DNA from: Epithemia pelagica
Lineage: Eukaryota; Protista; Bacillariophyta
Direction of reading: 5' to 3'
Length of the DNA: 64,000 nt
NCBI GenBank assembly: GCA_946965045.2
Contig: OX337240.1
Location: 2,914,001-2,978,000 of the forward strand
Each line of letters starts with the position of its first letter. Positions within the stretch are counted from its first letter, which is position 1. Both the position numbers and the translations under genes were made by a program. Positions 211 to 24,807 of the stretch are shown here, one piece after another. The notes under the pieces were generated by a model, which was not told where the DNA came from, did not search any database, and saw only the letters and a list, made by a program, of their open reading frames with translations.

Positions 211-2232
211 ATGAGCAATAAGAACAAGAATGGCCGCTTACCAGCAGACAGGAATACGACAACGACGAACAAGAGATGTGTCGTCCACAACAACAGCAGT
301 GGTGGTTTCACTGCAATTCGTCTGACTTGGAAACGGATCTTTTGGCATTTCGCGCTAGCAACGGTCGTGCCATTCGCCCTTGCGATTGTGTTGCGCCGAG
401 AAACAAGTCTTTTTGCTTCTCCGAATGACAATACTGCTACCCACCCAAGCTTTGTTGGACGGGCGAAACAAGAAAAGGTTTGTCGACGACAGGTGGGAAG
501 GAACAGTCTCGATAATACACGGCAAAGGAAAAACAAGACGCAGTCTTCTTCTTCCTTGGAAGTCTATCACGAAACACTGGTTCATCCGGCCTTGCTGTCG
601 CACAAGTTTCCTCAGCAGGTGGCCCTGGTGGTTGCCAGTCGGATCAGCAGTGACATGTCGGTGGTCCATCATGTCTTGAAACACACGACCGTCCAACACT
701 GTCATGTGCTGCACTTGGTTCACCATGAGGAGAATGAGAAGGACGCTTCGTCCTTGACGTGGAAGGACGATCCACGAGTGCATTGGACGACGGTAACGAA
801 TCTAGAGGCCGCTCGGACATGGTTCCTCGATCGCTGGGGTGCACCGAATGACGATGCAGAAGAAGAAGAAGAGGAAACAATAAAGAAAAAACTGGATGTC
901 ATTCTTTTGGATACCCTACTGTAAGTACATGAGCAGGACTGAGAGAATGTTTTGCAGCAGTGCCATGCATTCTGCTGGTTCTTTCACAAGAACTGCTCAC
1001 GAAAGCATTTCTCTGCCGCACCTTTTTCTTGCAGAGACATGGATACACCATATAACTTGTTCTCTCATCCCATGTTACGTGACCAATCCTTTCTGGATGC
1101 TATGGCTTTGGCACTCTCTCCGACGGGCGTGTTGGTAGCCCATGTTGGAGCAGTTACAGCCGCGACACCACCATCAATAATAACAACAGGCGGTGTGGAT
1201 TCTTATCCCCTCGAACGCTTTACGAGTATCTGGACCGATTCCGAGGCTACAAGAATGGTAGCCTATTCCGAATCGATTATCCTTGGTGGTCACCGCTCGG
1301 ATCACCAAGTCCACGAATTTCGTATCGTCTTTATGGATAATGATGCCATGCTGGCCAAATGGTATGCCGAGGCCTCCTCCATTCAGGTCGAACTGACCAA
1401 GAGGATTTCAAGTTCTGGTGGTGGACCACCAGCTGCACAACCACTGCGGTTTCTAGACGGAGCCACTCAACAAATCTATCATTTCCCCAGCCGCATGCAA
1501 GAAAACCATTATTGTCAAACGACGACACAAAAATCACCGCATTGTACCGTCGTTCGAGGGTTTGACCCCGATGTGCCCAATTTACCCGTTTCAGCTCTGG
1601 AATTTGGTACCAGTCGCGTGGCCAATGCCGGAAGGGGCGTCTTTTTCAAACAAGCCTTTGCCAAGGGAACCTACTTTACCATCGAAGAGGCAGTCCATAC
1701 TATGTTTGTCAAGCCCATGACGACTAAAATTATTCAAGATTTATGGAAATTGATACCAGCCAAGTGGAAAGCCTTGGGCAATTACTTGGATGGCTACGGA
1801 TTCATGGACGATTTTTGGGGTCTGGAAGCATATATGGTCGATCCAGGCATTACCACCTTTGCCAATCATGGATGCAATGGGACCAACAATATTGGATTAG
1901 CTACAAACTTTACCGAACTTACGGCCACTGTAGAGGAAATTACCACCTTGCTTCTGCCGTTCCAGTACCTCTTTGATCCTGCCGGGGATCGGTCCCACTT
2001 GCACCAATCCACCGCATCGGATGTTTTGTCACAATCCGTCCAGGCCGGAGACGAAGTCTTGGACAATTACATATTCTTTTCGTCTGAGAAGTATTGGGAA
2101 GAGGATTTACAAGAATTAAAGTTGATTTGTCTCGGACAACTGACAGGTATGGTGGTGGCTGTCGAGGGAAAAACGGTCGAACCGGCGGCTACCAGTCCCT
2201 ACAGGGGAACTATGTCCGTAGTCAAAGACTAG
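211..2232 (+). CDS. Membrane-anchored degenerate aminopropyltransferase-SET methyltransferase fusion (LCPA-synthase family), copy A; exons 211-920 and 1035-2232
   Basis: ATG at 211, then an N-terminal hydrophobic helix and the spermidine-synthase-like motifs YHETLVHPALL and LDVILLDTL; the GGG[D/E]G motif is absent. Phase-2 intron 921-1034 (GTAAGT..TTGCAG) restores the frame. SET motifs AGRGVFF, FANHGCNG and GDEVLDNY are present. Confidence 0.85.
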
Positions 2233-3498
2233 ACTTGAGATAACCAAATGAAATGAAAGGTGTGCTTCAATTAAGTCTTCTCATGTCAGTATCTTTCAAA
2301 ACTGCTGCGGGTAGTGTTGGTTTGGGTTACTAGAAGAGGATGGGCAAAGAGACTGCCTAGCCGGATTCATTGCTGTTGTTCACATAAGATTGCCATTGGG
2401 GTTTCCACACCTGCTTTTGTTGGACATGCCTCCTCCAGTTCCAACTCTCCACTGTCGAACGCAGAGGTTCCGTCAGATTTGCATGGTGAAGGAGAGAAAG
2501 AGGATGCGTCTGCTGCAGGAGGGGCCGCACGAGGTCAAGGGATGGGACGCTATGAACACTCCACGAACGAGCAGTCATAGTAGTCAACGAGTGGAGTGTT
2601 GCGTCGTTTCTCATTTTCCATGAATCATTGTTGGTGGAGCACTGACGAACAGTCAGTTCTCGCTGCCATCAATGGTGTCGAATACAAGCCTCGCAAGAAA
2701 CGAGAGTTACCCTGCCGATCGTAGTAATGTGACGACCATTATTTTAGACAAGATCGCCCGGTGCGAAGGTGCGATGGGCTTATGTATTGTCGGAATGTCT
2801 TTTCGGCCATGCGCCATTCAATACATATGCCCTACCCATCACTGCGGCGAAAGGATGGCCAGACCGTATCGGTAATCTACGATAGGAATAAGATGTGAGA
2901 CGAGCTAACCTACATAGTCTGATGTGCTTGGAACAAATCCCCGACTTGTCAGTCCCTAGAACAGTCAAAGGGTACTTCTACTAACAAAATCCACAATGCA
3001 TTGAGCAAGAAAGAAATAGACTTTCCAAAGAGCACTGGCTGCTGCAGCAGAAGCCCCTGTAGTGCATTGCACCGTAGTTTTGTTAAATTGACTACAGCAG
3101 CACTCCATAGAAACCTTGGTAGATATTTCGAAAAGGACGAACAAAGACAGCGGATTGCGTAGTACGGTGGCAATTCGCTTCCGCACAAGGATCATTGTCG
3201 TCATGATTTGGGTGCCAGGAAAGGATTCTCGTCTTCCGGTACCTCTCAATCCACGCCATCTAGAGATAATACCTAGTTGCACATTCCGGTCATTCCTCGC
3301 GGGGTGCTAATGCAAGTACAGAAGCCTTTTCGTAGTGGTGGCGGTGGTGGTGGTGGACCGTTCGTTTCGACGACGACGAGGGGATCCATGGACCATGCAA
3401 AACCTTGCCGCGATGCGCAGGCTCGTGAATAAGAGGAATCCACCGAGCAGAGGGGGCGTGCCCTTCCATAGAGATATATTCTGCGATTGGTCCTGATG

Positions 3499-4761
3499 CT
3501 AATGCAAATAAAATCCTCCTCCTCCTCCTCCTCCTCCTCCTCCTCCTCCTCCTTCGAGACGACAACACAAGGCATACAAGGCCAGCCCAGTGGTTACGAC
3601 ATCGTAGCACAAAATCACGACAGTATCTTCCGTCACGCCAAACACGTGTTCAAACAAGACTTCATTCCAGGCCTTGAGCGGGCCTTCCAATAGTGCATAA
3701 CCCAACAAGAACAGGACCAGTTCTACCTGTGGAAGACGTCGATGCAAGAGGTACAAGAGAGAGCAGTGGGACCATGGTTGTGGTTGTTCGAGTTGTTGTT
3801 GTTGTTGATTGTGGAGATGGAATTTGACACAATCGTAGACACGGGGTGAGGAAAACCAAAACAGACTGGTGGTCATGCCCCGCAACAACAGTGCTCCTGC
3901 TATCACAAACGCGACTTGTTGGAAGCCACTAAATCCCCGAACCAGCACATCGTCATCGTCGGCCGCCATGCAGGCGGTGGTCCATGATGATGACTGTTCT
4001 TGGGAGGCCGTTGTTGTTGTGGTTGTTGTTGTGGTTAATAAGAGACGATCCAGCAAGGACTGGAGTGCGTTGGTAACGATAAAATACCCCACGAGTGACA
4101 CAAGGCCAATGCCATGAGTCGTCCATTCCATCCGACACCACTTGTTCCACGGATTCGGAACAGTTGTAGGATTCTGGATCGCATCGTCCACTTCTTGCTG
4201 TTCTTGTGGAGCATCCCAAAACACTTCGTCTTCTTTTTCTTCTCGATGTTGGATTATATGGTGCGAGGGAGAGGATGGCATGTGGCTGGGTGGTTTTGAG
4301 CTGTAATGAATCGTCGTCTTTTTCTTTTTCTTCTTTTGTGGTTGTTGTTTTGGAATGATCAGGGCCCCTCCTTGTTGTTGTTGTTGTTGCTGCTGGTGCC
4401 TGTCATGACCACGACGACGGACGGCCAATTCTCCCTGCCACAAATGGTGTCGAATACACGCCTCGAGAAACGACGACGAGTTGTTACGAGTGGTGCTGGT
4501 GATGCGATGAAAGACCTTGGTTCGGTAGGCAAAGGAAAACTCTTCTTGTTGTGGTTGTGGTTGTTGTGGTTGTGTTTGCAGAGTCGATCCGCCATCGACA
4601 AACGTCTTGCGGTTGTTCTGGAAAAGGGAGGACGACGACGACCGATTGCCAGAGGAACCACAAACGCTTTTCTTGTCTTGGGCAGTATTGTTCTGGTCCA
4701 ACAGTGTCGTCTCAGGAACGGAACCAGAAGGGCCATTCGACGACCACAACAGCAACACCAT
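3499..4761 (-). CDS. Hypothetical low-complexity multi-pass membrane protein (possibly degenerate)
   Basis: 420-aa ORF with ATG, poly-Q/T/K tracts and about four hydrophobic segments in the C-terminal half. A homologous but disrupted copy lies at 20707-21640. The 3' end is uncertain. Confidence 0.4.
   Translation of the reverse strand: MVLLLWSSNGPSGSVPETTLLDQNNTAQDKKSVCGSSGNRSSSSSLFQNNRKTFVDGGSTLQTQPQQPQPQQEEFSFAYRTKVFHRITSTTRNNSSSFLEACIRHHLWQGELAVRRRGHDRHQQQQQQQQGGALIIPKQQPQKKKKKKTTIHYSSKPPSHMPSSPSHHIIQHREEKEDEVFWDAPQEQQEVDDAIQNPTTVPNPWNKWCRMEWTTHGIGLVSLVGYFIVTNALQSLLDRLLLTTTTTTTTTASQEQSSSWTTACMAADDDDVLVRGFSGFQQVAFVIAGALLLRGMTTSLFWFSSPRVYDCVKFHLHNQQQQQLEQPQPWSHCSLLYLLHRRLPQVELVLFLLGYALLEGPLKAWNEVLFEHVFGVTEDTVVILCYDVVTTGLALYALCCRLEGGGGGGGGGGGGGFYLH
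3514..3552. repeat. (TCC)13 microsatellite
   Basis: Read directly; the paralogous position near 21441 has only about three units. Confidence 0.9.
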
Positions 4762-5569
4762 GACTGGAACAAAATACTATAGTTAGAGGGCAGAAAGAGG
4801 GGAGAGGGGAAAAGAATGATTGGATTCAGGCCGTGATGGATAGCGAACACAGCGTTCGGATCCAACAGTCTACCATAATATTCTTCTCTCTAGAGTAGAG
4901 ACAACAGACAACTGGATCTGGGCTGGACAAAACGAACACCACGACGGTAGCTTGTCAATGATGGTTTCGACGTTCGACACCTCTTTTTGTGTTCTTTGTT
5001 GCTAGAAAATGTGCTCTCTTTATTCTTCTCTAACATTTTTCGGTACCGACTCACACGTGTTGTTTGGTGAAACTCATAGAGTCATAGCACGTGCGTTGGA
5101 TGCTCGCTCGGGTGTTCGAAATTTTGGGTTGGTAGTACTCCAAAAAATGGTTCGGGGAGAACCCCCCTCCGGGCGCGCTCTATGCGCCATCCATCCAAAT
5201 CCAACAGATAGGCCTACTACTACTCCTATTTCCTTTTGCATCTACGAGTACTACGATGTACTATCCGTATGTGTAACACGAGACCTCGTGGAGACGATGA
5301 GGAGTCTTAATCTTAGTTATCGTTGCTGGTTGCTGGACACTTGCGACAGCGAGAATTCAGGTCATGCCCGCGTGTCCGCACATGTCATGATAGACATGAC
5401 CACGTGCTTATAAGCGTGCCGTATCATGCAAACTCTTAACTGCGTCCTCACAGACACACACCTCCGTTGCGAACCTTATTTTTTGCATCCAACAACGACA
5501 ACGGCGTGTCTGTTGAATGAAGCCCATTGCGTTGTCGAACAACAGTGTTAAACCATAACGACGACGATT

Positions 5570-8550
5570 ATGAGAAGCAATACCGTTTCCTCCTCTTCCT
5601 CGTCACCGACAATGACTCCAACAACAACCGGAAAGCCCTCCTCCTCCTCCTTTCGGGTACGATTGTCCCTTCCCTTCTTGGTGGTTTCCTTGGTGACGGC
5701 CATTGTGCTTCCCTATTATCAAGCTCGACAGCAACTGTATTGGCGCCCTTCTTTTCTGAACACGGCTAAATACTCCAACAACAACAACAACAGCAATAAC
5801 AACAGCAAGTCCAAAAGCCAACAGTCCGATACGACCACCACAACCAGCACCAGCACCTCTCCTTCTCCTCCTTCGTCCAAGGAACCTCTGGACGTTCTGT
5901 ACGTGAATGCTCCTGGAGCAGCCGAGGTACAACGCCAGTTTCCAGCTCCTCGCTTGCATCCCGGCAAGGTTCCTCCCTTGGCACGCTACACGGGTCAATG
6001 CTTTGACAATCCCCTCGATCCCGAAACCACTGCGACCACCACCACCACCACGTGGAGTCAACATCGTGTCAATGTGCATCTCGACCTGGAGGACTCCTCG
6101 AGCCACAACGTCACCACTACTCCAGAAGAAGAAGAAGAACATGAGTACGATCACAAGGGTGGTCCGTATGAACCTGCCGGCCAGCACTTGTTGATTGACA
6201 TTCAACACGTTTCACCACGATTCTTGTTGGATACCCAAGAGCTCGTTCAAGCCATGTTGCAAATTGTCACACAATCCAAATTAACCCTCTTGTCCTATCA
6301 TTGCCATGATTTGCAGGCACCCATGGGAGTTTCCTGTGTCGGTGTCTTGCTCGAATCGCACGTCTCGTTGCATACCTGGCCCAGCGCCGGTGTCATTGCC
6401 TTGGGTACGTATATTATATTTTATAGAGTGAGTCTTATCTGTGTTTTGGAAGGACCATGGTTCTGACAATCTTGTTTCTATTTCATGTGGTTGGTGGTTG
6501 CTGTTGGTTCGTTAGATTTGTTTACCTGTGGATCGCAAAGTTTAATGCCCCTCTTGCCTCTTTTGAAGGAACTCTTTGCCATTCGCAATGACAGTGTTCC
6601 AAACGCACCTGAACCAGTCCTGACATGGTCTCACAAGAAACGTGGCTATCGCGATTATTTTGGAGCCGACGGTCAACTCCGCAACAGTACCAACCACGAG
6701 GATGATGACGACGACGACGACGAGCATTCGGGTCCAACGACCGAATTGGAACTCGAACGATACTTGTTGGGTTCGACCGGAGTAGACAGCCAAGCCAAGA
6801 CACCGCAATTGGAAACCTCAACAAAGTTTCAACAAGTAGAAATATATGGTACGGCTTCTTCCAACAAACGCCTCTTTTTGGATGGCGTTGTTCAATCCAC
6901 CTTGAATGGATTGGAAGCCTACCATGAAGCCTTGGTCCATCCAGCCTTGACCATGGTCGAAGGAGCCGCTTCCGACTCGTCCTCCTTGCGCGTGGCCATT
7001 ATTGGTGGGGGAGAGGGAACCACCCTCCGTGAAGTACTCAAACACCAATCGGTCGAATCTTGTACCATGATTGATATTGATGCCGAATTCATGGACTTGG
7101 CTCGAGTCCACCTACCCGAATGGAATGACTGCCGTGATTTGGTCGATGCGGCGCCCGTCAACAACAACAACACGACGGATGGATACAGCTCATGCTTTGA
7201 CCATCCACGCGCTCGGGTGTTTCCTGAAGATGCCATTTCGTGGTTCATCGACCGCTATCACAACGAAGAGGATATTGACGAATCGGAAAAGTTTGATGTG
7301 ATCATTATGGATGCTCTGTAAGTTTTCCCGTTGGATGCTTTTCTTCGCAATTGCAATCATGGTTTCTCTGTTCTTATTATCAAACCATGACTCTCAACTG
7401 GACTCTTTCCTATTACTTTTCCAGGGATCCTTCTTCGGCAGTGGAGTTTTCTGATATCTTGTACAAGGACGAGACGTTCGTATCCTCTTTGGTTCATGCC
7501 TTGACGGATCTTGGTGTCATGGTTGTTCAAGTGGGCTGTGCTCCCTACATGAGTGATGATGACTCGAACTTGATTCATGTCGCTAAGGCTCCCACACTGG
7601 CCCAATTTGAGCACATTTTAGAATCGCACGGAATGGTTTCCATGAAGTCCTATCAAGAGACACATGGGCAATTTCTGGGCCCCTGGGAATTCCGAATCGT
7701 TCACAAAAGCTATGATACGCTCAAAAATTACTTTTACGAGCCGGCCATGGTGAATTTACAACAGGCCAAGAGCGCCATGGCAACTCGGTCCAAGGACTTT
7801 CCCTTTTCGTACTTTGATGGTGCGACATGGGCATCGGCGCAGTATCCGTCGCGCATTGATTCTAGATTTTACTGTTTTACACATCCCCGTGCATCGAAAT
7901 TGTGCCAAGAGCTACAGGGGTACGATCCGAACCTTCCGAATGTTCCGGGATCTGCTCTGGAAGTCAAGCCAAGTCTCATTCCCAACGGAGGTCGAGGCTT
8001 GTTTTTCACACAAGATTTTGAGGAAGGATCATACTTGGCAATTGACCAAAGTGTATGGCATATGGACGCATTGCCCGATACCGTTGAGCTTCTCCTGGAC
8101 GACATGATTCAGAGTCCTGCACGGCGCAATTTTGAGTTGTGGTCGGCCTACTTGTTTGGGTATGGGTTTTCGAGTGACTACTATGGATGGCCCTCGTCTC
8201 ATGTAGATGCCGGTGTGGCAACCTTTTTAAATCATGGATGCAATGGAACCTATGTGGTGGGCAGACGCACCAATGTGACTGAGCTCACCGCGGATCCGTT
8301 GGAGATACCACCGGAACTCATGGAAATTGAAGAGGAATTGGCATTTTTCAATCCCATCGTAGATCGTAATCACTTTGTTTTCCAAGGCAAGGAAGTATTG
8401 TTGGAGAACGTACATGCGGGCCAAGAAGTGTTGGGGAATTATCTTGAATACTATCACGAAGAAAACTATCAAGCCGCCATTGCCGATATCAAGGCACAAT
8501 GCTTACAACAAGGAACTGGGACCATTCATAAATATGAGAGTCACCACTAA
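5570..8550 (+). CDS. AdoMetDC-aminopropyltransferase-SET triple fusion (putative LCPA synthase/N-methyltransferase); exons 5570-6404, 6516-7317, 7425-8550
   Basis: N-terminal TM. Prokaryotic-type S-adenosylmethionine decarboxylase motifs GQHLLID, LLESHVSLHTWP (pyruvoyl-forming ES site) and spliced ALDLFTCG. Aminopropyltransferase motifs FLDGVVQST, YHEALVHPAL, IIGGGEG and FDVIIMDALDP. SET motifs GGRGLFF, FLNHGCNG and GQEVLGNY. Both GT-AG introns restore frame and motifs. Confidence 0.92.
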
Positions 8551-8747: not shown

Positions 8748-9136
8748 CACTTCGCCTTGCTCGCGCGCCATGATGTCACCTGCTTTCGGGTCCATGGACA
8801 GACGACATACACTTAGGCCGTTCCTTACGGCAAACCAAACCAAACCAAACCAAACCAAACCTGAATCCTCAAATTTCACCGTCTGGGCGTCGTATATTCG
8901 GGTTTTGGGCTTTTCAGGTTTGGTTACCAAACCTGAAACACACTAGGGATAAAGTTTTCGTTCTGCTACTGTACGCATTTCTTACAGTTTCGAATTCGAC
9001 TTGGCATGCGTGCGTTCAACTCCAACGGTCACTCGTCCCACTTCGCCTTGCTCGCGCGCCATGATGTCACCTGCTTTCGGGTCCATGGACAGACGACATA
9101 CACTTAGGCCGTTCCTTACGGCAAACCAAACCAAAC
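8748..9136. repeat. 291-bp tandem duplication: unit 1 is 8748-9038; unit 2 starts at 9039 and is split by the copia element
   Basis: CACTTCGCCTTGCTCGCGCG starts at both 8748 and 9039. Unit 2 resumes at 15433-15619. Each unit contains an (AAACC)n tract. Confidence 0.9.
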
Positions 9137-9258
9137 CAAAATATGGCTAGCCTATTGAGCGAAATTAGCGATAGTAAGGCTAGTAAGGCCTCTAAGCTTG
9201 AGGCATGAGATAGTCACAATTTTATATGTTTTCGAGTCACACCCCTACGCGTATTTTG
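9137..9258 (+). repeat. 5' LTR of copia-1
   Basis: CAAAATATGG...GCGTATTTTG, identical to 15311-15432, with a 7-bp terminal inverted repeat. Confidence 0.9.
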
Positions 9259-9272
9259 GTTTATCAGACCCA
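9258..9272 (+). promoter_or_regulatory. Putative primer-binding site, complementary to a tRNA-Ile(GAU)-like anticodon arm
   Basis: GGTTTATCAGACCCA abuts the LTR end. Its reverse complement UGGGU-CUGAUAA-ACC has anticodon stem-loop architecture. Confidence 0.55.
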
Positions 9273-9696
9273 AGAAACTCTGCGATTATGGTAAAAGCTA
9301 TGGCACAATGGCCTGGGAAGGTCGAGAAATATCTGGATCGATGATATAGATCCGCCCAAAGGTCGACTAATGAAGTCGTACAGCTAGTCTCGTAGAATAT
9401 CCGGCCTGCAACGGGGTTTGGACCGGACTAGCTAACAGATGTGGTCTGCGAGTGCGCACATCTGGGGCAATGGCGGACGCGCCGGTCTTGGCCGTTGACA
9501 AGACAAAGCCTGCTATGCGGTCATGATTATTTCATAAATGAAACATGTGCCGACGATGCAGCTGTGCACGCTTTCTACCTTTTGAATCGCCCGAGATGAG
9601 TGAAGAACCGGACCGTGTGACTGAAAGAGAATGCTCACTTCCGAGTACAAGAAAGTCCCAATTGATCCGTCTACTCGTAGATAAAAGAAGTAAACC

Positions 9697-11175
9697 ATGG
9701 CCGCACCTCCAACCGCTCAAGAACTGCTCACTCAGCTCAATGGCTACCTTGAGAATACCCTCCTAATTGGTCAACAAGAAGTCCGTAACGCTCTCAATGC
9801 ACAAGGCCTTGTTTCGATTGGCGATTTTGATGGTCTAAAGGAAGACGATATCGCTGAAATTTGCGCTAATGCCAGGAAACCCGGTGGAACTATTCCTAAT
9901 CCGGACTATGACGCTGCTAATCCAGTTCCTGGAGTCCCAGTTACCATTACGAACCCTGGAGTATTGGTCGGGCATGTTTTGGAAAAGCGCTTGAAGATGC
10001 TTGGATACTACGTTCAGTATCTCAACAAGGTCGATCGCGAGTTTAGTGCGGCAACGGCAACATTGGCTCAAATCCAAGGACTCTACCGTCTTAAAGAAGC
10101 AGACGATGAGTATGATAATGAGATTGAGCTTCCCGAGAAACTCACAAATGTTGAGAACATACGAGTCGTTCTCGAAGATTTAGACAACTACCTTGAGAGG
10201 AAAAGAGGAGTTACTATGATCCCTTTGGCAGCGTATACCCGCTCGATGCCAACTCCTCCTCCGGTTAACTTGGACCCTGGAATCGGAGCACCAACGTACT
10301 TGAGAGAACTAATCAGGCGTGCGCCACTAACTGGAGCAACTGCGGTGGCTGACAAAGAGGCAGTTTGGGATGTCATACGCCACATAACCCATGATGGCCC
10401 TGGATGGGGCTGGGTTCAAGCCTTTAGCCGCAGTCGAGACGGAAGAGGTGCTTATATTGCCTTAAAGAGTCATTACTTAGGCGACGCCTTTCAAACAAGA
10501 CTGAGGGCAAAAGCAGACCAAGTGTTGGAATCGGCCTATTATGACGGGTCAAAACGAAACTACACATATGAGAGGTACATTGAATCTCTCCAGAGGGCCT
10601 TTACGGACCTCGAATCAACTGGCGAGATGGTCAGTAATGAAAGGAAGGTTAGAGTTTTATTGTTGGGTGTATCTGATCCAAGGCTTGAAAGCGCGAAGAA
10701 CACCATACTCGCTACACCTTCACTCAGGGCAAACTTTGAAGTCGCTTCCAACTATTTGGCAGAGATTCTTGACAGCAAGGTCTCGTACAGCGCTTCAACA
10801 AGGAAGGCCCGAATCTCATCTATCCAGCATAACAAGAATGGAAAAGGTGGAAACAAGAAGAATGGGAGTAACCAATCAAACGGTTTTGACCCCAACAAAT
10901 ATTATCCCTTTAGAAAGTGGATAAAACTCACAAAGGAACAACAGCAAATGGTCCGAGAAGCAAGGGACGCTGTTAACAGCAGCACAAAGAAAAGGTCTGC
11001 TGCTGCTGTTCATTGTAAGAACGGTAAGAACAAGAGAAAAGGTGTTGATGGAAGCACGACGACAACTACCGATGAGAGTTCAGAGACAACTGGCGACTCC
11101 AGTGAGAACGACAAGGAACTCGGTATTGGCGCCATAATGAGCCAGAGAAAGAAAGGCAGGAGAGAAACCGTGTGA
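9697..11175 (+). CDS. gag: Copia gag-like protein
   Basis: 492-aa ORF directly upstream of pol, with a gag-like core (YDGSKRNYTYERY, RKVRVLLLGVSDPRL) and a basic C-terminus. Confidence 0.85.
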   Translation: MAAPPTAQELLTQLNGYLENTLLIGQQEVRNALNAQGLVSIGDFDGLKEDDIAEICANARKPGGTIPNPDYDAANPVPGVPVTITNPGVLVGHVLEKRLKMLGYYVQYLNKVDREFSAATATLAQIQGLYRLKEADDEYDNEIELPEKLTNVENIRVVLEDLDNYLERKRGVTMIPLAAYTRSMPTPPPVNLDPGIGAPTYLRELIRRAPLTGATAVADKEAVWDVIRHITHDGPGWGWVQAFSRSRDGRGAYIALKSHYLGDAFQTRLRAKADQVLESAYYDGSKRNYTYERYIESLQRAFTDLESTGEMVSNERKVRVLLLGVSDPRLESAKNTILATPSLRANFEVASNYLAEILDSKVSYSASTRKARISSIQHNKNGKGGNKKNGSNQSNGFDPNKYYPFRKWIKLTKEQQQMVREARDAVNSSTKKRSAAAVHCKNGKNKRKGVDGSTTTTTDESSETTGDSSENDKELGIGAIMSQRKKGRRETV

Positions 11176-14100: not shown

Positions 14101-15174
14101 GATGACGTCCTTGTCATCTCTCAGAAGGCACAGGAGATCTTGAATATGATCGACCAACATTATTTATTGAAACCGGATTCGATCGGAGTACCCAAGATCT
14201 ATCTGGGGAACCAAGTAGAAACCTTCGACATTGACAATGACGTGTCTAAAAGATGTTGGGCGCTAAGTTCAAAGCGGTACGCAACAGAAGCCATACGGAA
14301 TGTCAAGGTTTGGATGGATGAAAGAAACTTGAGTCTTAAGACTCGAGCCCCAAGCGTGCTCCCAACAGGATACCGTCCAGAATTGGATACGAGCCCATAT
14401 TGCAATGCTGATTGGCAATCGTTTTTCCAACAGCAGATTGGTGTCCTCAGATGGTTGGTCGAGCTGGGAAGGATTGACATTACTGCGGAAGTTTCAATGT
14501 TGGCGGCTTTCTTAGCAGGAGCAAGGGAAGGTCATGTTCATGCGATGCTTCATGTCTTCGCTTATCTGAACTTGCATGACCGTTCGAGACTGGTACTAGA
14601 CCCTTCATATATTCAGCACGGAGAAGAGTTGACAGCTGATTGGGCAGGTTTTTATCCAGACGCCAAAGAAGACATTCCGGCAGACGCTCCAGAACCATTG
14701 GGTAATCCAGTCCAGATGACTGTCTTCGTCGACTCTGATCATGCTGGAGATTTGATCACCAGACGTTCAAGAACTGGAGTTTTAATCTATCTGAATCGAG
14801 CTCCTGTAACTTGGTACAGTAAGAAACAGACCAGCGTCGAAACATCAACATTTGGGTCAGAATTCATGGCTCTCAAAGTGGGCATTGAAATGGTAAAAGG
14901 ACTTCGATACAAGTTAAGGATGATGGGCGTACCTCTGGATGGACATGCGCATATACGGGTTGATAACATGTCTGTGGTACTGAATACGTCGGTCCCTGAA
15001 TCAACACTGAAAAAGAAGTCAAATTCAATCGCATATCATTTTGTTCGTGAGAATGTTGCATCGGGCATGTGTCGTGTTGCTTTTGAACCGTCGAAGACTA
15101 ACCTTGCTGACATTCTTACCAAGATCCAAACAGGTACAGAGAGAACACGGTTAGCATCAATGATCCTATATTAG
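11176..15174 (+). CDS. pol: Copia pol (protease, integrase, chromo-like segment, RT, RNase H), in frame with gag after one TGA; first ATG at 11230
   Basis: Protease ELDSHADT; integrase YTDTLF / VVPDNAPE / NLAEANIRELK; RT KARYVAGGH, ADIAGAYLNA, KALYGLK, IYIDDVL; RNase H FVDSDHAGD, STFGSEF, VDNMSVV, NLADILTK. Open from 11176 to the stop. Confidence 0.93.
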   Translation, partial: RDVREIDALSRDISVRTSMCELDSHADTCCLGKDCLVLYETDKAEVSGFSTQLGKLKETPVITGVLAYDEPVTGETYLLYFHQALHLPMMEKSLLNPNQMREAGIIVNDVPLKFIKQEQRTSESHSLVVPINDDNESTLTIPLELKGVISGFTVRKPSWEEIANVDPANRIEMTNDSPEWAPNDSAEEDVDERRLRQDVRQDMVRTRGSRSLSNRMAKMVRVNSRTVAETSHKRKGTIDPIGLASRWGIGLSVAERTFKATTQLGVRDFSQGVGSKRLKHTAYQLKHRRLRADVYTDTLFSDTKSLSQNTCGQIFATEFGWVQFYPLERKKDAHTALEKVFNDYGIFNSVVPDNAPELTSGKFKKTAQKFGCRIKPIEAWTPNQNLAEANIRELKRAYRREMRRTNAPAVLWDHCLQLVAERRSHTASATEPFDEGPPIKMLTGDTPDISHLVEHRWYDPVWYSNPGFENRELGRWLGPSKSVGQAMSSKILTRKGKIVHRTSVWPLSVEKSHDPSFTAQRDQFDTDLKEALGNRFEGLDPEEGDDPAEEGNDTPFFEAYEDDEQEDTRVPEADDYKVDAYDKLISAKVMLPLGDSKRPGQVIRRKRDADGNPIGRSSSNPYLDTSLYEVEFHDGHVESYAANLIAENIYEQLDDEGNKYKLIDQIMDHRKDATAIPISEGTFFHNGREHKKKTTRGWQLCILWKDGSTSWEMLKDLKESYPLEVAEYAVANLLDKEPAFNWWVDFTLKRRARLIKAISSTRYMRKWQKYGIELPKTVERALQIDKETGTDFWAKALQLEMSKIFPAVKILEEGAPHPPGHQVIPCHIVFDIKMDFTRKARYVAGGHRTQEPETPTYASVVSRESVRVGFLLAALNGINILAADIAGAYLNAPCHERVCTKCGLEFGKENEGRYAIITKALYGLKTSAFAWREHLSTTLQESLGFRPCRADPDVYLRASTKDDGSKYYELVFIYIDDVLVISQKAQEILNMIDQHYLLKPDSIGVPKIYLGNQVETFDIDNDVSKRCWALSSKRYATEAIRNVKVWMDERNLSLKTRAPSVLPTGYRPELDTSPYCNADWQSFFQQQIGVLRWLVELGRIDITAEVSMLAAFLAGAREGHVHAMLHVFAYLNLHDRSRLVLDPSYIQHGEELTADWAGFYPDAKEDIPADAPEPLGNPVQMTVFVDSDHAGDLITRRSRTGVLIYLNRAPVTWYSKKQTSVETSTFGSEFMALKVGIEMVKGLRYKLRMMGVPLDGHAHIRVDNMSVVLNTSVPESTLKKKSNSIAYHFVRENVASGMCRVAFEPSKTNLADILTKIQTGTERTRLASMILY

Positions 15175-15310
15175 TGCGTTTCCCGCCAACCTGTGTTGGG
15201 ACTGGGTACGTCCTGCACCTAAACGATGAAAGGACTTTAAGCAGGTCTAGATGGAACGAGAGAAGATTGGCACAGCTACTTCATTACGAGACGAAGAACT
15301 GTGAGGGGAC

Positions 15311-15432
15311 CAAAATATGGCTAGCCTATTGAGCGAAATTAGCGATAGTAAGGCTAGTAAGGCCTCTAAGCTTGAGGCATGAGATAGTCACAATTTTATA
15401 TGTTTTCGAGTCACACCCCTACGCGTATTTTG
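15311..15432 (+). repeat. 3' LTR of copia-1
   Basis: Identical to 9137-9258 and preceded by the purine tract at 15303-15309. Confidence 0.9.
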
Positions 15433-15619
15433 AAACCAAACCTGAATCCTCAAATTTCACCGTCTGGGCGTCGTATATTCGGGTTTTGGGCTTTTCAGGT
15501 TTGGTTACCAAACCTGAAACACACTAGGGATAAAGTTTTCGTTCTGCTACTGTACGCATTTCTTACAGTTTCGAATTCGACTTGGCATGCGTGCGTTCAA
15601 CTCCAACGGTCACTCGTCC
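15433..15619. repeat. Remainder of unit 2 of the 291-bp tandem duplication
   Basis: AAACCAAACCTGAATCC...ACTCGTCC matches ~8852-9038. Confidence 0.9.
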
Positions 15620-16638
15620 CCTTATCTCTAATGAAATTAGACGACATGTCCTTTGTACGATGGAATTCTTTTAGGCTGTTCCTCGAGCACGACAAAACCA
15701 ATCTGAAAACGTGACACGTCATCAATTTACATCATCTTGACGTCATATTTCACTGCACAGTTTTTGTCGGCCCTCCATTCCGACAAATCCAAAGCTCAGG
15801 ATTTGTCGGCCGACAAATCCTGAAATAGCATTAGGGATTGTGTTATCTTTATTCTAGTGTACATATGGGATAGAGAAACTTCCAGCGCGCGTTCTGGACT
15901 TCAGCGGCGCGCGTTCGACTCCAACGGTCCCCCAATCCCTAATGAAGTATTCCAACTTTCGAATAGTATTGGTATTCAATTCCACAGAGTACTTTTGGGG
16001 AGTGTTGGGGACCTAGAGGTAGGCGCGGGCTCTTGTTTTGGTTTTGGTTTTGGTTTTGCTCGAGGATGGAAAAACTGGCCAATGTGAAAATTCTCCAAGA
16101 TGTCACGTTCTCAAATTGGTTTTGTCGTGCTCGAGGAACGGCCTTAGTATTGTATTCAATTTAATGAAGTCAAATGGGGGGGAAGTTGGGGGACGAGGCG
16201 CGGTCTCTGACTTTGGTAAGGACGGCAAATCGCGCCATTTTCCAAACAAATCCTGGAAAGGTCTTCACAGGTTTGGTTTGGTTTGCCGTAAGGAACGGCC
16301 TTAGGCCAATCCTTTAGCTCGCAAAACCAAATCGAGATTGCGTGCACGTTGGAACAGAAACTCTTGACACGACACGCACTCACCAACTGAGCACCCATAT
16401 CCGAACACACGCTCAGCTAGCTAGAGTTCTCGTCTTGAGAAATTTTCCTCGTAACGAATGCGATAATCGCCATAGGAAGACCCAACGCTCAATTACCAAT
16501 TATTCGTTCCTCGTACCTCCTTTCTTTGTTGACTAGGCTTCTTACTCCGCCCCCTAGTCTCAACGCAAGCGCCCTTTCCAAACAGCGAAAGCAATCTCAC
16601 TTTTCTTTGTCGTCCAAGAAGAAAACAAGGTGGGAGCG

Positions 16639-19369
16639 ATGATCCGAATGGCAATGACGACCGATAGCAGCAGCAATGTTCCTCAAGTGGACACTGGCAG
16701 CACTAATAGGACTAGTCTTTACGGGGTGCGACTTTCGTGGACGTTCGTGACGGTGTCCTTGCTCCTGTCCATGGTGGGTCCCTATTATGTGGCAAAGAAT
16801 GTGGCCAACGTCTTAACCAGCACGATTCCCAGTGCAACAAAGGATGGGTCGACACAGTCATTTTCCCCCTCCTCCTCCTCCTCCTCTCGAACCGCCGACC
16901 CAAACTTTCCCATTCCCATATTACATCCTGGAAAACCAGCTCCCAACGCACGCTATACAGGACACTGTTTTGATGATCCCCATCCGTCTTCAACGAACAA
17001 AGAACGAAAGCAAGTTTCGTGGAGTCAACATCGCATTGATGTTCATATGGACTTGGATTCTTTCTCCCCTTCCTCCTTGAACCAAAGTGATGTTGCTGCG
17101 GTCCATGTCGAACAGCAACAACAACAAGAAGAAGAGCATGAATACGATCACAGGGGCGGTCCGTATGAGCCAGCTGGACAACATTTGCTGATTGACATTC
17201 GTCATGTGGATCCCTCCTTTTTGTTGGACACGAAACGCTTGGTACAAGCCATGGTCCATATTGTGACACTGTCCAAATTGACCCTCTTGTCTTATCACTG
17301 CCATGATTTACAAGTTCCCATGGGAGTTTCCTGTGTCGGTGTCTTGCTCGAATCGCATGTCTCGTTGCATACCTGGCCCAGTGCTGGAGTCATTACCTTG
17401 GGTACGACAGTGTTTCCTAAACAAGAAACCTATCAAACATTCACCTTTCTCTCACACCCTGTTGTGTGCCTTTCGTTTCCAATGTTCCAGATCTTTTTAC
17501 GTGTGGAGCACAGAGTTTAATGCCCTTGGTACCCGTCTTGGAGGAACACTTTGCCATTCCATTCTCTGCTGGCGTTGACAAACAAGATCCACCACAACCC
17601 ATCATGACGTGGTCCCATAAGAAACGGGGATATCGAGATTACTTTAGCAACGGCAATGTGGAAAGTGGGACCTCCCCCCACAATGCATCCTCGTCGTCCT
17701 CTTCCACCAGCAGTGTGCACTTGGATTCGGGCGATGCCGATCGTTACTTGTTGGGTCTCACGAGTGTCGATCGTAGAGCCAAAACAGTCCAACTCGAGAC
17801 GGAAACCGACTTTCAAACAGTCGAAATCTTTGGAGTGGGTGCTGGCGGCAACATGAAAAAGATGGAGACGAAGGAAGATCCGGCAGCGTCCAACAAGCGC
17901 ATCTTTTTGAACGGTGTCTTGCAGTCCACCATGCATGGATTGGAAGCCTACCATGAAGCCTTGGTCCATCCGGCCTTGACCATGGTCGAACAAGCCTCCT
18001 ACCAGCAAAACCCAAAGAAGCTTCGAGTGGCTATTATTGGAGGTGGCGAAGGCGCCACTTTGCGGGAAGTTCTCAAACACAAATCGGTAGATTATTGTGC
18101 CATGATTGAAATTGATCAAGAGTTTGTCGAGTTAGCTCAGGAACACTTGAAGGAATGGAATGATTGTCAAGATTTGGCAATGGAGAAGGAGAATGCCGAA
18201 GAAGAGGATGATGACGACGACGAAGAGGACGATGATGAAGAAGAGGACGACTCTGGATATCGTTCTTGCTTTGACGATCCTCGTGCTGAAATTTTTACAG
18301 AGGACGCCGTGTCGTGGTTCGTTGGCCGTTATGGAGATCATGCCACGACCAAGGCGGAGAAATTTGATGTCATTATCATGGATGCTCTGTAAGTCAGTCG
18401 TTTCGTGTCCCACTGATGCAAAGCAAAGTTTGTCGACCCTTTCTCATATTGTTCTGTCTTGTTTGTGTCCTGCTGTTGTTGGACATGATCAGGGACCCTT
18501 CCTCTTCCGTCGAATTTTCGGACGTCTTGTATCGAGACAAGGCCTTTGTCTCCTCCTTGGCCCATGCTCTGGAGGATACTCATGGTGTCATGGTGGTGCA
18601 AGTGGGAGAAGTCCAATATTTTTCGGACGTGGACCCCATGCCTTTCCACGGTGCGTATACTAGTACCGACAAGACTCCCTATTTGACGACTTTTGGAACC
18701 ATTTTGCAACAACATGGCGAGATGGTGGCAATGAATACGTATTCCGAATCGCATGGTCAATTCATGGGACCGTGGGAATTCCGAATCTTGCACAAGATGG
18801 CCGACACGGCCCGACAGTATTATGCCTCTCCGGCTCGTATCGATTGGACTCTGGCTCGTAATGCCCAGTCTTCTCCTTCTGCTCATTTATCCACAGATAC
18901 GTCGTCGTCGTCCTCCTCCTTGTTTCAGTATTTTGATGGTGCCACGTGGGCAGCGGCCCAGTATCCGTCGACGGTCGATGCCACTGTCTTTTGTGGCCCC
19001 ACGTATCCAGCGCAAGGAGACGGCCAACAACCACCACAACCGTTGTATTGTCAAGAACAAGTGCGAGGATACGACCCTCACGAATCGGCCCGGTTGGTTC
19101 AGGAACATGCTTCCTCCTTGGCAGGGAAACTACACGTCTTGCCCGACACGGTCCAGTTGCTGGAAACCGAAATGGCCCACAGTCCAGCCTCTTCCGTGCT
19201 TCCACCCGTGTTGCAGCACCTTGGCAGCAACCATGAGACGACACCGCTCCTGCCAGCATGGCCGGACCATGCCAGTTCCACGACTGCAGATTCGTCGTCG
19301 TCGTCTTGGAATCCATCCGGGTTGTTGTTTTTTGATCCCTTTGGGGATCGCACGCATTGGACTCGCTAA
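16639..19369 (+). CDS. AdoMetDC-aminopropyltransferase fusion with an eroded SET region (LCPA-synthase paralog); exons 16639-17401, 17491-18388, 18493-19369
   Basis: Same intron positions and phases as the 5570 gene. ESH, TLDLFTCG, YHEALVHPAL, IIGGGEG and FDVIIMDALDP are intact. The C-terminus keeps GYDP, LHVLPDTVQLL and FFDPFGDR but lacks the GRG, NHGC and GxEV SET motifs. The start codon is uncertain (16639, 16648 or 16654). Confidence 0.85.
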
Positions 19370-19370
19370 G

Positions 19371-20410: not shown

Positions 20411-20706
20411 AAACGCACGTGCTGTGAACTCTATGAGTTTCACCAAACAACGCAACAACACGCGTGAGTCGGTACCGAAAAATGGTAGAGAATGTGCCCA
20501 TTTCACATTTTCAATTTTCTAGCTACGCAATAGTGTCTCTCCCGAGAACAAGAACGGAGAAAAGTCGAAACCATCTTTGACAACCATTTGTACTCTGTTG
20601 CGTGGTGTGTGGATCCAAACGCTGTGTTCGCCGAAGTCCATCACGCCCTGAATCCAATCATTCAGTTTCCCTCTCCACTCTCTGCCCTCTAGTATTTTGT
20701 TCCATC

Positions 20707-21640
20707 ATGCTGTTGTTGTTGTGTAATGATCCTTCTGGTTCCATTACGACTCAAGAGAAGAAGAGTGTTGGTGGTTCGTCATCTTCCCACAACCGCAACA
20801 ACAACCAGCACTGCAAAACGTCCGTCGATGGCGGATTGACACTGCAACCACAACAAGAGTCGTCCTTTGCCTTTCGAACCAAGGTCTTTCATCGCATCAC
20901 CAGAACCACTCGTAACAACTCGTCGTCGTTTCTCGAGGCGTGTATTCGGTACCATTTGTGGCAGGGAGAACTGGCTGTGCGTCTTGTTCGTTGTCGTCAT
21001 TGCAGGCAACAACAACAAAAAAGACGATTCTCCACAACCCAAAACACATGCCATCTTCTCCCTCGCACCATACCATCCAACATCAAGAAGAAGAAGAAGA
21101 AGAAGAAGAAGAAGAAGAAGAAGAAGAAGAAGAAGAAGAAGAAGAAGAAGAAGAAGAAGAAAAAGAAGAAGAACACGTGTTTTGGGATGCGTGCTCTACA
21201 CAAGAACAACAACAACAATTAGATGACTAGGTTCCGAATCCGTGGAACAGGTGGTGTCGAATGGAATGGACGACGCATGGCATTGGCCTTGTGTCACTCA
21301 TGGGCTATGCTCTGTTGGAAGGTCCGCTCAATGCCTGGAATGAAGTCTTGTTTGAACACGTGTTTGGCGTGACGGACGATACAGCCGTGATTTTGCGTAA
21401 CCATTGGGCTGGCCTTGTTTGCCTTGTGTCGTCGTCACGAAGGAGGAGGATGATTTTATTTGCATTAGCAAAGGAACAAACGCAGAATATATCTATATGG
21501 AAGGACACGACCCCTCTGCTCGGTGGATTCCTCTTTTTTATTAGCCTGCGCATCGCGGCAAGGTTTTGCATGGTCCATTGATCCCCTCGTCGTCGTCGAA
21601 ACGAACGGTCTACCACCAGCACCACGACAAGGATTCTGTG
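20707..21640 (+). pseudogene. Disrupted paralog of the 3499-4761 membrane-protein ORF
   Basis: Homologous blocks (AFRTKVFHRIT, MEWTTHGIGLVSL, GYALLEGPL) are spread over several frames. About 0.4 kb between GLVSL and GYALLEGP is deleted, and the (GAA)n tract is expanded. Confidence 0.65.
21085..21173. repeat. (AAG)~29 microsatellite
   Basis: Read directly; one interruption. Confidence 0.9.
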
Positions 21641-22748
21641 CGTGCATTAGCACCCCGCGAGGAATGACCGGAATGTGCAACTAGGTATCATCTCCAGATG
21701 GCGGGGATTGAGAGGTACCGGAAGACGAGAATCCTTCCCTGGCAAGCAAATCATGACGACGATGATCCTATCGATAGAATCCCACTGCCTTTTAGTACGG
21801 AAACGAATTACTCCTACCACCATAGTACGCAATCCGCTGTCTTTGTTCGTCATTTTCAAATTTTCGAAGGTTTCTATGGAGTGCTGCTGGAGTCAATTTA
21901 ACAAAACTACAATGCACTACCGGGGCTTCTGCTGCAGCAGCTAGTGCTCTATGTATTCAAAATGCTACAAGTCCATTTCTTTCTTGCTCAATGCATTGTG
22001 GATATTGTTACTTTTGACTGTTCTAGGGACTGACAAGTCGGGGAGTTGTTCCAAGCACATCAGACTAGGTAGGTTAGCTCGTCTTACATCTTATTCCTTT
22101 CGTAGATTTCCGATACGGTCTGGCCATCCTTTCGCCGCAGTGATGGGTAGGGCTTTATGTCTTGAAAGGCGCATGGCCGAAAGGACATTCCGACGATACA
22201 TAAGCCCATCGCACCTTCGCACCGGGCGATCTGGTCTTAAATAATGGTCGTCACATTACTACGATCGGCAGGGTAACTCTCGTTTCTTGCGAGGCTTGTA
22301 TTCGACACCATTGATGGCAGCGAGAACTGACTGTTCGTCAGTGCTCCACCAACAATGATTCATGGAAAATGAGAAACGACGCAACACTCCACTCGTTGAC
22401 TACTATGACTGCTCGTTCGTGGAGTGTTCATAGCGTCCCATCCCTTGACCTCGTGCGGCCCCTCCTGCAGCAGACGCATCCTCATTCTCTCCTTCACCAT
22501 GCGAATCTGACGGAACCTCTGCGTTGGACAGTGAAGAGTTCGAACTGGAGGAGGCATGTCCAACAAAATCAGGTGTGGAAACCCCAATGGCAATCATGTG
22601 AACAATAGCAATGGATCCGGCTAGGAAGTCTCGTTGCCCATCCTCTTCTAGTAACCCAAACCAACACTACCCGCAGCAGTTTTGAAAGATACTGACATGA
22701 GAAGACTTAATTGAAGCACACCTTTCATTTCATTTGGTTATCTCAAGT

Positions 22749-24796
22749 CTAGTCTTTGACTACGAACATAGTTTCCCTGTAGGGACTGGTAGCCGCCGGT
22801 TCGACCGTTTTTCCCTCGACAGCCACCACCAAACCTGTCCGTTGTCCGAGACAAATCAACTTTAATTCTTGTATATCCTCTTCCCAATACTTCTCCGACG
22901 AAAAGAATATGTAATTGTCCAAGACTTCGTCTCCAGCCTGGACGGATTGTGACAAAACATCCTGTACGGTGGATATCTTCCACAAGTGTGACCGATCCCC
23001 GGCGGGATCAAAGAGGTACTGAAACGGCAGAAACAAGGTGGTCATATCCTCTACAGTGGCCGTAAGTTCGGTAAAGTTTGTAGCCATTCCAATATTGTTG
23101 GTCCCATTGCATCCATGATTGGCAAAGGTGGTAATGCCTGGATCGACAATATATGCTTCCAGACCCCAAAAATCGTGCTCGAATCCGTAGCCATCCAAGT
23201 AATTGCCCAAGGATTTCCACTTGGCTGGTATCAATTCCCATAATTCTAGAATAATTTGAGTCGTCATGGGCTTGACAAACATACTATGGACTGCCTCTTC
23301 GATGGTAAAATAGGTTCCCTTGGCAAAGGCTTGTTTGAAAAAGACGCCCCTTCCGGCATTGGCCACGCGACTGGTACCAAATTCCAGAGCCGAAACGGGT
23401 AAATTGGGCACATCGGGGTCAAACCCTCGAACGACGGTACAATGCGGCGATTTTTGTGTCGTCGTTTGACAATAGTGATTTTCTTGAATACGGCTGGGGT
23501 AATGATAGATTTGTTGAGTGGCTCCGTCTAGAAACCGCAGTGGTTGTGCAGCTGGTGGTCCACCACCAGCACTGGAAATCCTCTTGGTCAGTTCGACCTG
23601 AATGGAGGAGGCATCGGCATACCATTCGGCCAGCAAGGCATCATTATCCATAAAGACGATACGAAATTCGTGGACTCGGTGATGCGAGCGGTGACCACCA
23701 AGGAAAATCGATTCGGAATAGGCTTCCATTCTTGTAGCCTCGGAATCGGCCCAGATACTCGTAAAGCGTTCGAGGGGGTATGAATCCACACCACCTGTTG
23801 TTGTTATTGGTGGTGGTGTCGCGGCTGTAACTGCTCCAACATGGGCTACCAACACGCCCGTCGGAGAGAGTGCCAAAACCAACGCATCCAGAAACGATTG
23901 GTCATGTAGCATAGGATGAGAGAACAAGTTATATGGTGCATCCATGTCTCTGCAAGAAAAAGTGCGGCAGAGAAATGTTTTCTTGAGCAGTTCTTGTGAA
24001 AGAACCAGCAGAATGCATGGCACTACTGCAAAACACTCTCCCAGTCCTGCTCGTGTACTTACAGTAGGGTATCCAAAAGAATGACATCCAGTTTATTCTC
24101 TATTATTTCCTCTTCTTCTTCGTCTTCTTCTTCTTCTTCTGCATCGTCATTCGGTGCACCCCAGCGATCGAGGAACCATGTCCGAGCGGCCTCTAGATTC
24201 GTGACCGTCGTACAATGCACTCGCGGATCGTCCTTCCACGTCAAGGACGAAGCGTCCTTCTCATTCTCCTCATGGTGAACCAAGTGCAGCACATGACAGT
24301 GTTGGACGGTCGTGTGTTTCAAGACATGATGGACCACCGCCATGTCACTGCTGATCCGACTGGCAACCACCAGGGCCACCTGCTGAGGAGATTTGTGCGA
24401 CAGCAAGGCCGGATGAACCAGTGTTTCGTGATAGAGTTCCAAGGAAGAAGAAGAAGAAGACTGCGTTTTGTTTTTCCTTTGCCGTGTATCATCGAGACTG
24501 TTCCTTCCCACCTGTCGTCGACAAACCTTTTCTTGTTTCGCTCTTCCAACAAAGCTTGGGTGGGTAGTAGAATTGTCATTCGGAGCAGCAAAAAGACTTG
24601 TTTCTCGGCGCAACACAATCGCAAGTGCGAATGGCACGACCGTTGCTAGAACGAAATGCCAAAAGATCCGTTTCCAAGTCAGGCGAATTGCAGTGAAACC
24701 ACCACTGTTGTTGTTGTGGACGACACATCTCTTGTTCGTCGTTGTCGTATTCCTGTCTTCTGGTAAGCGGACATTCTTGGTGTTCTTATCGCTCAT
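22749..24796 (-). CDS. Degenerate aminopropyltransferase-SET fusion, copy B; exons 24796-24063 and 23949-22749
   Basis: Intact reading frame paralogous to 211-2232 with the same phase-2 intron (23950-24062). SET motifs are intact. Confidence 0.85.
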
Positions 24797-24807
24797 GACA
24801 CGATACG

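Follow-up and report, generated by a model that had tools for sequence, protein, structure and literature searches.

Gene content of the locus

The subject of this study is a 64,000-nucleotide window of the genome of the pennate diatom Epithemia pelagica (GCA_946965045.2, contig OX337240.1, positions 2,914,001-2,978,000, forward strand), which contains a group of four spliced genes, called A, B, C and D below. As judged from their sequences, all four are members of the diatom AdoMetDC-aminopropyltransferase-SET fusion family, that is, of proteins built from S-adenosylmethionine decarboxylase (AdoMetDC), aminopropyltransferase (APT) and SET modules, and are proposed to synthesise and methylate the long polyamines involved in shaping the silica shell. 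All coordinates are positions in the window. The gene models were obtained by reading the splice junctions directly and by testing the GT-AG combinations, and are as follows.

Gene A: 211-2232, plus strand; exons 211-920 and 1035-2232; 635 amino acids. Anchor at amino acids 43-61; pseudo-APT 541-1494, including the intron; SET 1543-2154.
Gene B: 5570-8550, plus strand; exons 5570-6404, 6516-7317 and 7425-8550; 920 amino acids. N-terminal anchor; AdoMetDC 6167-6664; APT 6857-7854; SET 7903-8529.
Gene C: 16639-19369, plus strand; exons 16639-17401, 17491-18388 and 18493-19369; 845 amino acids. Weak anchor; AdoMetDC 17164-17648; APT 17793-18973; decayed, truncated former SET tail 18974-19366.
Gene D: 22749-24796, minus strand; exons 24796-24063 and 23949-22749; 644 amino acids; an inverted near-copy of A. 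Pseudo-APT 23490-24463; SET 22827-23441.

Once the GT-AG introns are removed, each of the four genes has one uninterrupted coding frame. The initial annotation had reported a common phase-2 intron after D(A/T)L in all of them, and the models bear this out: the donor is CT/GTAAGT, and the intron lies at 920/1035 in A, 7317/7425 in B, 18388/18493 in C and 24063/23949 in D. Since a phase-2 intron interrupts the identical codon in the Epithemia clementina gene for a related protein (P0007), it must be old. B and C have a second intron in common, of phase 1 and inside AdoMetDC. An N-terminal transmembrane segment had also been claimed for all four proteins. Each indeed has one hydrophobic 19-mer near its N-terminus, with Kyte-Doolittle values of 2.22 (A), 2.1 (B), 1.4 (C) and 2.35 (D), the segment of C being the weakest of these predicted anchors. 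The layout is that of an old tandem pair (B and C) flanked by a younger inverted pair (A and D).

Domain content of the four proteins

We now turn our attention to the modules that each protein has kept. The exon translations of B and C match the Pfam families AdoMet_dc (E-values of 3.2e-15 and 1.3e-14, respectively) and Spermine_synth (5.6e-17 and 3.7e-16), and the Spermine_synth matches of A and D are sub-threshold (0.055 and 0.012). Hidden Markov models (HMMs) of the three modules were also made for the family itself, by aligning B to 12 full-length homologues. With these, all three modules are matched in B, and in C the AdoMetDC and APT modules are matched, with no match to SET. In A and D the APT module is found with E-values of 1.7e-30 and 8.5e-33 and the C-terminal SET module with 2.9e-56 and 9.7e-56, and the family HMM for AdoMetDC gives no match in either.

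The motifs agree with this picture. The class 1b AdoMetDC features, namely the Glu-Ser self-processing site, HTWP and FTCG, are present in B and C only, in the arrangement LLESH...HTWP...FTCG with the processing and catalytic stretch LLESHVSLHTWP...DLFTCG, and this part of the two proteins aligns to the Thermotoga maritima proenzyme 1VR7, for B the nearest AdoMetDC of solved structure, with ESH.HTWP kept. The APT features (GGGxG, (I/V)(D/E)ID and DxxDP) are likewise found in B and C, and all three are replaced in A and D, as listed here.

Loop binding decarboxylated S-adenosylmethionine (dcSAM): GGGEG in B and C; VASRIS in A and D.
Acidic site: IDID / IEID in B and C; LHLV in A and D.
Catalytic site: MDALDP in B and C; LDTLLDMD in A and D.

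The segments YHE(T)LVHPAL and LDVI..D are retained in A and D. In the SET module, the columns GRG, NHGCNG and E..NY, which are invariant in the family and correspond to the SET features GxG, NHxC and a C-terminal E..(N/D)Y, are kept in A, B and D. All three are missing from C, the protein stopping after FFDPFGDRTHWTR, so that about a third of the ancestral C-terminus is gone. In the predicted structure of its last exon only the APT half folds, with a predicted local distance difference test score (pLDDT) of 67-85; residues 126-291 score below 50 and form no strands. A frameshift or a hidden exon was considered as an explanation for the missing SET of C and discarded, a tblastn search of all frames downstream to 21 kb giving only the two in-frame islands already modelled.

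The assignment of the C-terminal module as SET deserves a comment, as Pfam SET (PF00856) has no match in the window proteins at E ≤ 0.1 and its gathering threshold of 22.4 bits is not reached. A HMMER search with the last exon of B gave 664 representative homologues, and several of these pass Pfam SET over the same region (P0044 with 33.9, P0054 with 30.8, P0042 with 29.5 and P0031 with 28.7 bits). A profile made from 37 sequences of the C-terminal region and searched against the PDB found SET methyltransferases only, a protein of the Legionella LegAS4 type first (5e-5), followed by EZH2, MLL, PRDM, SMYD and SETD7. The AlphaFold model of the region in B has a pLDDT of 87.9, and in a Foldseek search with it 50 of the 50 matches listed were SET domains, with SETD8, MLL1 and NSD1 at a probability of 1.00. 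The Pfam miss is thus a limit of sensitivity, since homologues pass over the same region and the fold is that of SET. By profile and predicted fold, the C-terminal module of A, B and D is a SET domain, as had been proposed, although the plain HMM annotation suggested as a check misses it.

The central observation of the initial annotation, that the paralogs keep complementary modules, is therefore confirmed: B has AdoMetDC, APT and SET, C is without SET, and A and D are without AdoMetDC and combine a degenerate APT with an intact SET. The four genes represent three module types and not four, however, because A and D are a young inverted duplicate.

Selection on the paralogs

The closest database proteins come from the ENA assembly ERZ21939226, in which the DNA of contig ctg1362l matches the window with 97-99% identity and shows the same order, that is, A, an uncharacterised open reading frame (ORF), B, C, and D inverted. 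We treat this assembly as a second haplotype, or an independent assembly, of the same species. Its loci L001 and L002 were accordingly rejected as synteny from another species and provide allelic evidence only. When the models are projected onto it, all four coding sequences are intact. There are 15 substitutions in A, 44 in B, 20 in C and 6 in D, and every indel is a multiple of three (6 nt in A; 3, 3 and 3 in B; 9 and 3 in C; 9 in D). Two dispersed A-type paralogs were also found in this assembly, E (L003, ctg1340l, 9166-11260) and F (L004, ctg1358l, 9138-11167). With an identity of 72-75% to A, both share its anchor, pseudo-APT and intron and carry an intact SET. The allelic comparisons and those between paralogs gave the following values, where ω is dN/dS.

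B, allelic: pN/pS 0.34; 25 of 46 changes non-synonymous, against an expected fraction of 0.78; p 4e-4.
C, allelic: pN/pS 0.31; biased to synonymous changes; p 0.004.
D, allelic: pN/pS 0.30, from 6 changes only.
A, allelic: pN/pS 0.82; 11 of 15 changes non-synonymous; p 0.46.
A and D: dS 0.07; ω 0.58, p 0.013; ω 0.78 in the SET domain.
A or D and E or F, whole gene: ω 0.37-0.53, p 5e-6 to 2e-12.
A or D and E or F, pseudo-APT alone: ω 0.37-0.50.
A or D and E or F, SET alone: ω 0.34-0.68.
B and C: pS 0.6-0.74 in all domains, close to saturation of the synonymous sites; ω 0.12 in AdoMetDC and 0.12-0.21 in APT.

Judging from these substitution patterns, A to D all evolve under purifying selection, the constraint on the A-type genes being only moderate. 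Rates near neutrality in the reduced paralogs, which had been named as speaking against specialisation, were not found: ω is 0.37-0.53 for the A-type genes and 0.12-0.21 for the domains of C. Because pS is 0.6-0.74 in every domain, the B-C duplication is old. The two genes have an 82%-identical stretch of 284 nt, for which a recent gene conversion was considered. This was rejected, as synonymous divergence is high throughout, and with the lowest window at a pS of 0.42 constraint is the simpler reading of this stretch.

The family across diatoms

Among the full-length representatives of the family every combination of modules is seen. Some proteins have kept all three modules, and in others only SET has decayed or is missing. 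In a further kind SET is intact, with a dead APT and an AdoMetDC that is dead or absent, and in the last kind AdoMetDC is dead while APT and SET are intact. It should be noted that the family counts are approximate, since many entries are automatic predictions and some are possibly truncated at the 5' end. In a tree of 52 sequences the intact, dead and absent-module architectures are interleaved. A, D, E and F form one clade (support 100) inside an 11-member, almost entirely SET-only group, which includes Seminavis robusta Sro268_g103630, annotated as an expressed SET domain-containing protein. SET-only proteins occur in at least four other places of the tree, and its starred branches force at least five changes. 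In the methylation-only relatives from other diatoms, which include Seminavis robusta P0098 (annotated as expressed) and the MMETSP transcript P0169, the SET motifs are invariant, and the G-loop, DxxDP and, in those with a remnant of AdoMetDC, its Glu-Ser site are broken in different ways.

B and C belong to a well-supported clade of eight with Epithemia proteins, five of the eight being without the SET motifs. When the SET columns are removed, B and C are sisters (99/96). The alternative that C is an orthologue of the SET-less Epithemia paralogs, with a single old loss, is rejected by approximately unbiased (AU) tests with p-values of 0.004 and 0.001. From the sister relation and these rejections it follows that C lost its SET independently, after the duplication in its own lineage. 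Several Epithemia paralogs end shortly after an F.DP..DR motif, at the point where C also ends; according to the tree, these losses are independent. As far as the sequences tell, both reduced architectures thus recur independently across diatoms, and module decay is a recurrent habit of the family.

The clustering itself has a different status. We looked for a second family member within 10 kb at five loci, those of the two closest Epithemia relatives found (P0007 and P0037), a B-type gene on a metagenomic contig of 121 kb, E and F, and there was none at any of them. P0007 and P0037 lie ca 190 kb apart on one contig. In Epithemia clementina JBGMNV010000226.1 (L005, L007), the SET-bearing KAL7562640 and the SET-less KAL7562643 are ca 190 kb apart. 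The synteny check proposed for other diatoms has therefore a negative outcome, the tight four-gene order recurring only in the 97-99% identical second haplotype or assembly and not at the five other family loci. No k-mers above shuffled controls are common to the 600 nt in front of B, C and D. Since there is no cluster at the five other loci and there are no common upstream words, the adjacency of A to D shows no sign of selection, and the layout is best explained as a leftover of tandem and inverted duplication.

Relation to known systems

According to the papers that cite it (PMC3820600, PMC12029483), Michael 2011 (FEBS Lett 585:2627) proposed AdoMetDC-APT fusions, with or without a histone-methyltransferase domain, as synthases and N-methylases of long-chain polyamines (LCPAs). 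As of December 2025 the fusions are still uncharacterised and "require further study", and one Nitzschia species is said to have 32 APT-containing fusions (PMC12803844). Our literature search found no functional tests of LCPA synthases. B has the same architecture as the fusions proposed in 2011, with an AdoMetDC of the bacterial class 1b type, a bacterial-type APT and SET, and C resembles the two-domain form. The best named relative of the last exon of B is Epithemia clementina KAL7562640.1, with 58% identity. A and D differ from these fusions in being without AdoMetDC and in having an APT homologue that would be blind to dcSAM in front of an intact SET, and C differs in that its two-domain state is a secondary loss of SET from a three-domain ancestor, and does not go back to an original fusion of two domains. 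The 2011 description reportedly also covers fusions with another order of modules, in which AdoMetDC is catalytically dead.

The second system to be compared is that of the BacSETs (Nemoto 2020, Mar Biotechnol 22:551), diatom-specific SET methyltransferases with an ER-targeting N-terminus, to which later papers ascribe a regulation of cell-wall proteins and LCPAs (PMC11151724, PMC11554505). The expression of 24 BacSETs and that of eight AMDC-APT genes in Seminavis robusta reach their maximum together, at cytokinesis (bioRxiv 10.1101/2020.11.23.393678). The A/D-type proteins, which are confined to diatoms, have a SET domain, and A and D each have one N-terminal hydrophobic 19-mer (Kyte-Doolittle 2.2-2.35) that may serve in targeting; they would fit the proposed methylation of cell-wall proteins or LCPAs, and may be a subgroup of the BacSETs. 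In A and D the SET is preceded by a conserved pseudoenzyme domain derived from APT, and the intron position and the ancestry are in common with the trifunctional fusions.

The closest solved APT relatives of B and C are the stand-alone Thermus thermophilus SpeE (1UIR) and the Pyrococcus enzyme 2E5W, with E-values of 2e-20 and 1e-18. Their G-loop and acidic motifs are identical to those of the B and C APT; unlike B and C, they are soluble and have no anchor, fused AdoMetDC or SET. Thermophile aminopropyltransferases contribute to long and branched polyamines. For the pseudo-domain of A and D there is a precedent in human spermine synthase, which descends from a bacterial AdoMetDC-APT fusion and has kept a dead AdoMetDC-like domain that is needed for dimer formation (PMC12803844). 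In A and D, by contrast, it is the APT that is dead by its motifs, and SET would be the live module.

In view of this literature, the novelty first claimed for the division of labour was overstated, as both the fusion family and a split between elongation and methylation enzymes had been described. When set against the published families as the citing papers present them, what may be new is the origin of the methylation-only proteins from triple fusions by decay, with a pseudo-APT that has been kept under selection. The independent recurrence of SET loss and of APT/AdoMetDC loss, and the presence of all three kinds at one locus, may also be new.

Interpretation

The reading that we favour, with moderate confidence, is that locally duplicated members of the fusion family have specialised into complete, elongation-only and methylation-only copies of the candidate LCPA enzymes. 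By its motifs and its modelled fold, B would be the complete enzyme, having everything expected for dcSAM production (a pyruvoyl AdoMetDC with the ES self-cleavage site), for aminopropyl transfer and for binding of S-adenosylmethionine (SAM) in a SET fold. After duplication, C would have become an elongation-only enzyme and A and D methylation-only enzymes, in which the pseudo-APT could serve as a scaffold or as a polyamine-binding module. The three reduced proteins would act as separate enzymes beside the complete B in one secretory or silica-deposition pathway, and the relative dosage of the copies would set chain length against N-methylation. The clustering would stem from tandem and inverted duplication; gene conversion would have kept the outer arms of the inverted pair alike, and adjacency would not be needed. 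Of the interpretation put forward at the outset, the specialisation of intact and constrained paralogs is well founded, a physical assembly line is speculative, and a role in LCPA chemistry is putative.

It is important to point out that several considerations weigh against this specialisation reading. Taken by itself, the allele pair of A shows no significant departure from neutrality (11 non-synonymous changes among 15, p 0.46), an ω of 0.4-0.6 in the A/D-type genes is relaxed compared to typical enzymes and indicates only moderate constraint, and A and D are so young that selection may not yet have acted on whether both are kept. The link to LCPAs is hypothetical and has been taken over from the literature. 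In addition, SET domains are known as lysine methyltransferases, and their acting on the secondary amines of free polyamines would be an assumption. Access to SAM would also depend on the membrane topology.

An alternative that we regard as unlikely is that A and D are BacSET-like protein-lysine methyltransferases, acting on lysines of silaffin or cingulin instead of free polyamine chains, in which case the pseudo-APT would be no more than a leftover of the structure, and A and D would lie beside B and C through common descent only. The fold and the motifs of SET are typical of lysine methyltransferases, BacSETs are described in the papers cited above (PMC11151724, PMC11554505) as protein methyltransferases that regulate cell-wall proteins and LCPAs, and the ancient, mostly SET-only subgroup holds the Seminavis robusta protein annotated as SET domain-containing. 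A leftover should drift, however, and yet the pseudo-APT is under purifying selection. Moreover, the polyamine-handling ancestry and the kept amine-side motifs point to a polyamine or a polyamine-modified lysine as the substrate, which would blur the distinction from the specialisation reading.

We have also considered a split-enzyme assembly line, in which the pseudo-APT of A and D pairs with the APT of C through the aminopropyltransferase dimer interface, so that a B-like membrane-anchored AdoMetDC-APT-SET unit is rebuilt in trans and the subunit ratio tunes methylation. The modules are exactly complementary, and the genes are adjacent in both haplotypes. The pseudo-APT is as constrained as SET (ω 0.37-0.50) and keeps YHE-LVHPAL and LDVI..D while having lost the dcSAM loop, and in human spermine synthase a dead domain is kept for dimer formation (PMC12803844). 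Against this, the promoters have no common motif above chance. Elsewhere in this genome A-type genes occur singly, at two loci, and the five family loci are without a neighbour from the family within 10 kb. Furthermore, SET-less and SET-only copies arose many times independently, which would require no obligate partner. We give the assembly line little credence. The same low standing applies to its stricter form, a long shot in which A and D are obligate partners of SET-less AdoMetDC-APT paralogs and a pseudo-APT/APT heterodimer threads the polyamine from the elongation site to the SET site. If this were true, the stoichiometry of split and unsplit enzymes would tune the species-specific chain length, N-methylation and silica nanopattern, and the repeated independent splitting across diatoms would mean selection for tunability.

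Finally, that C and/or A and D are redundant copies becoming pseudogenes, with a complementarity due to coincidental decay, is highly improbable: the loss of about a third of the C-terminus in C, the A-D ω of 0.58 (0.78 in the SET domain), the allelic changes of A and the transposon-rich locus would fit such a decay, but the frames are open in both haplotypes with every indel in frame, the kept domains of C have an ω of 0.12-0.21 over saturated dS with allelic changes biased to synonymous (p 0.004), and the A-type architecture persists in four paralogs (ω 0.37-0.53, p down to 2e-12) and in other genera.

Ever since the LCPAs of diatoms were described, it has been an open question which enzymes synthesise and methylate them, the candidate fusions being uncharacterised (PMC12803844). 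On the specialisation reading, the locus is a natural domain dissection within one genome: next to the complete enzyme there are one copy for elongation only and two for methylation only, and all four are intact and constrained. Constructs and knockouts made from it would allow each step to be assigned cleanly, so that its value lies in being an experimental handle and not in being a system of a new kind. More important than the cluster may be the wider pattern. Derivatives with SET only or without SET have arisen repeatedly, the surviving module is always motif-perfect and the pseudo-APT is under selection. This suggests that diatoms routinely separate elongation from methylation, and that the dead APT domain still has a function.

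Structure of the locus and neighbouring elements

The elements in which the four genes are embedded are the following.

Left arm of the inverted duplication: 1-5097; carries gene A and a low-complexity ORF at 3499-4761, minus strand.
Right arm of the inverted duplication: 20412-25083; carries gene D and a degraded copy of the ORF at 3499-4761.
Ty1/copia long terminal repeat (LTR) retrotransposon: 8852-15620, plus strand; between B and C, outside the gene family.

The two arms (1-5097 against 25083-20412) form a palindrome of at least 5 kb around the A/D pair. They are 91-96% identical over the outer part (1-3704) and 69-90% over the inner part (4084-5097). This gradient suggests either two events, that is, a two-step growth of the palindrome, or a homogenisation of the outer arms by gene conversion. 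The low-complexity ORF at 3499-4761 encodes 420 amino acids, is intact on the left arm only and is conserved in the second haplotype.

The LTRs of the copia element are 100% identical direct repeats of 188 nt (8852-9039 and 15433-15620), and its pol ORF lies at 11230-15174 (RVT_2, 7.8e-18). The insertion is haplotype-specific, as the second haplotype is without window positions 9043-15432 and has one LTR copy there, which is either a solo LTR or an empty site with one repeat. Another 477 nt (15675-16151) are also missing from the second assembly, and these match, in inverted orientation, sequence upstream of A there. A second copia-like element lies directly upstream of D, at 25861-28734 on the minus strand (RVT_2, 1.2e-10), and a similar RVT_2 ORF is found upstream of D in the other assembly.

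Further along the window there is a RING-finger ORF of 1523 amino acids at 32033-36604. At 59412-62903, on the plus strand, consecutive ORFs with HisKA, HATPase_c and Response_reg domains are probably one spliced hybrid histidine kinase.

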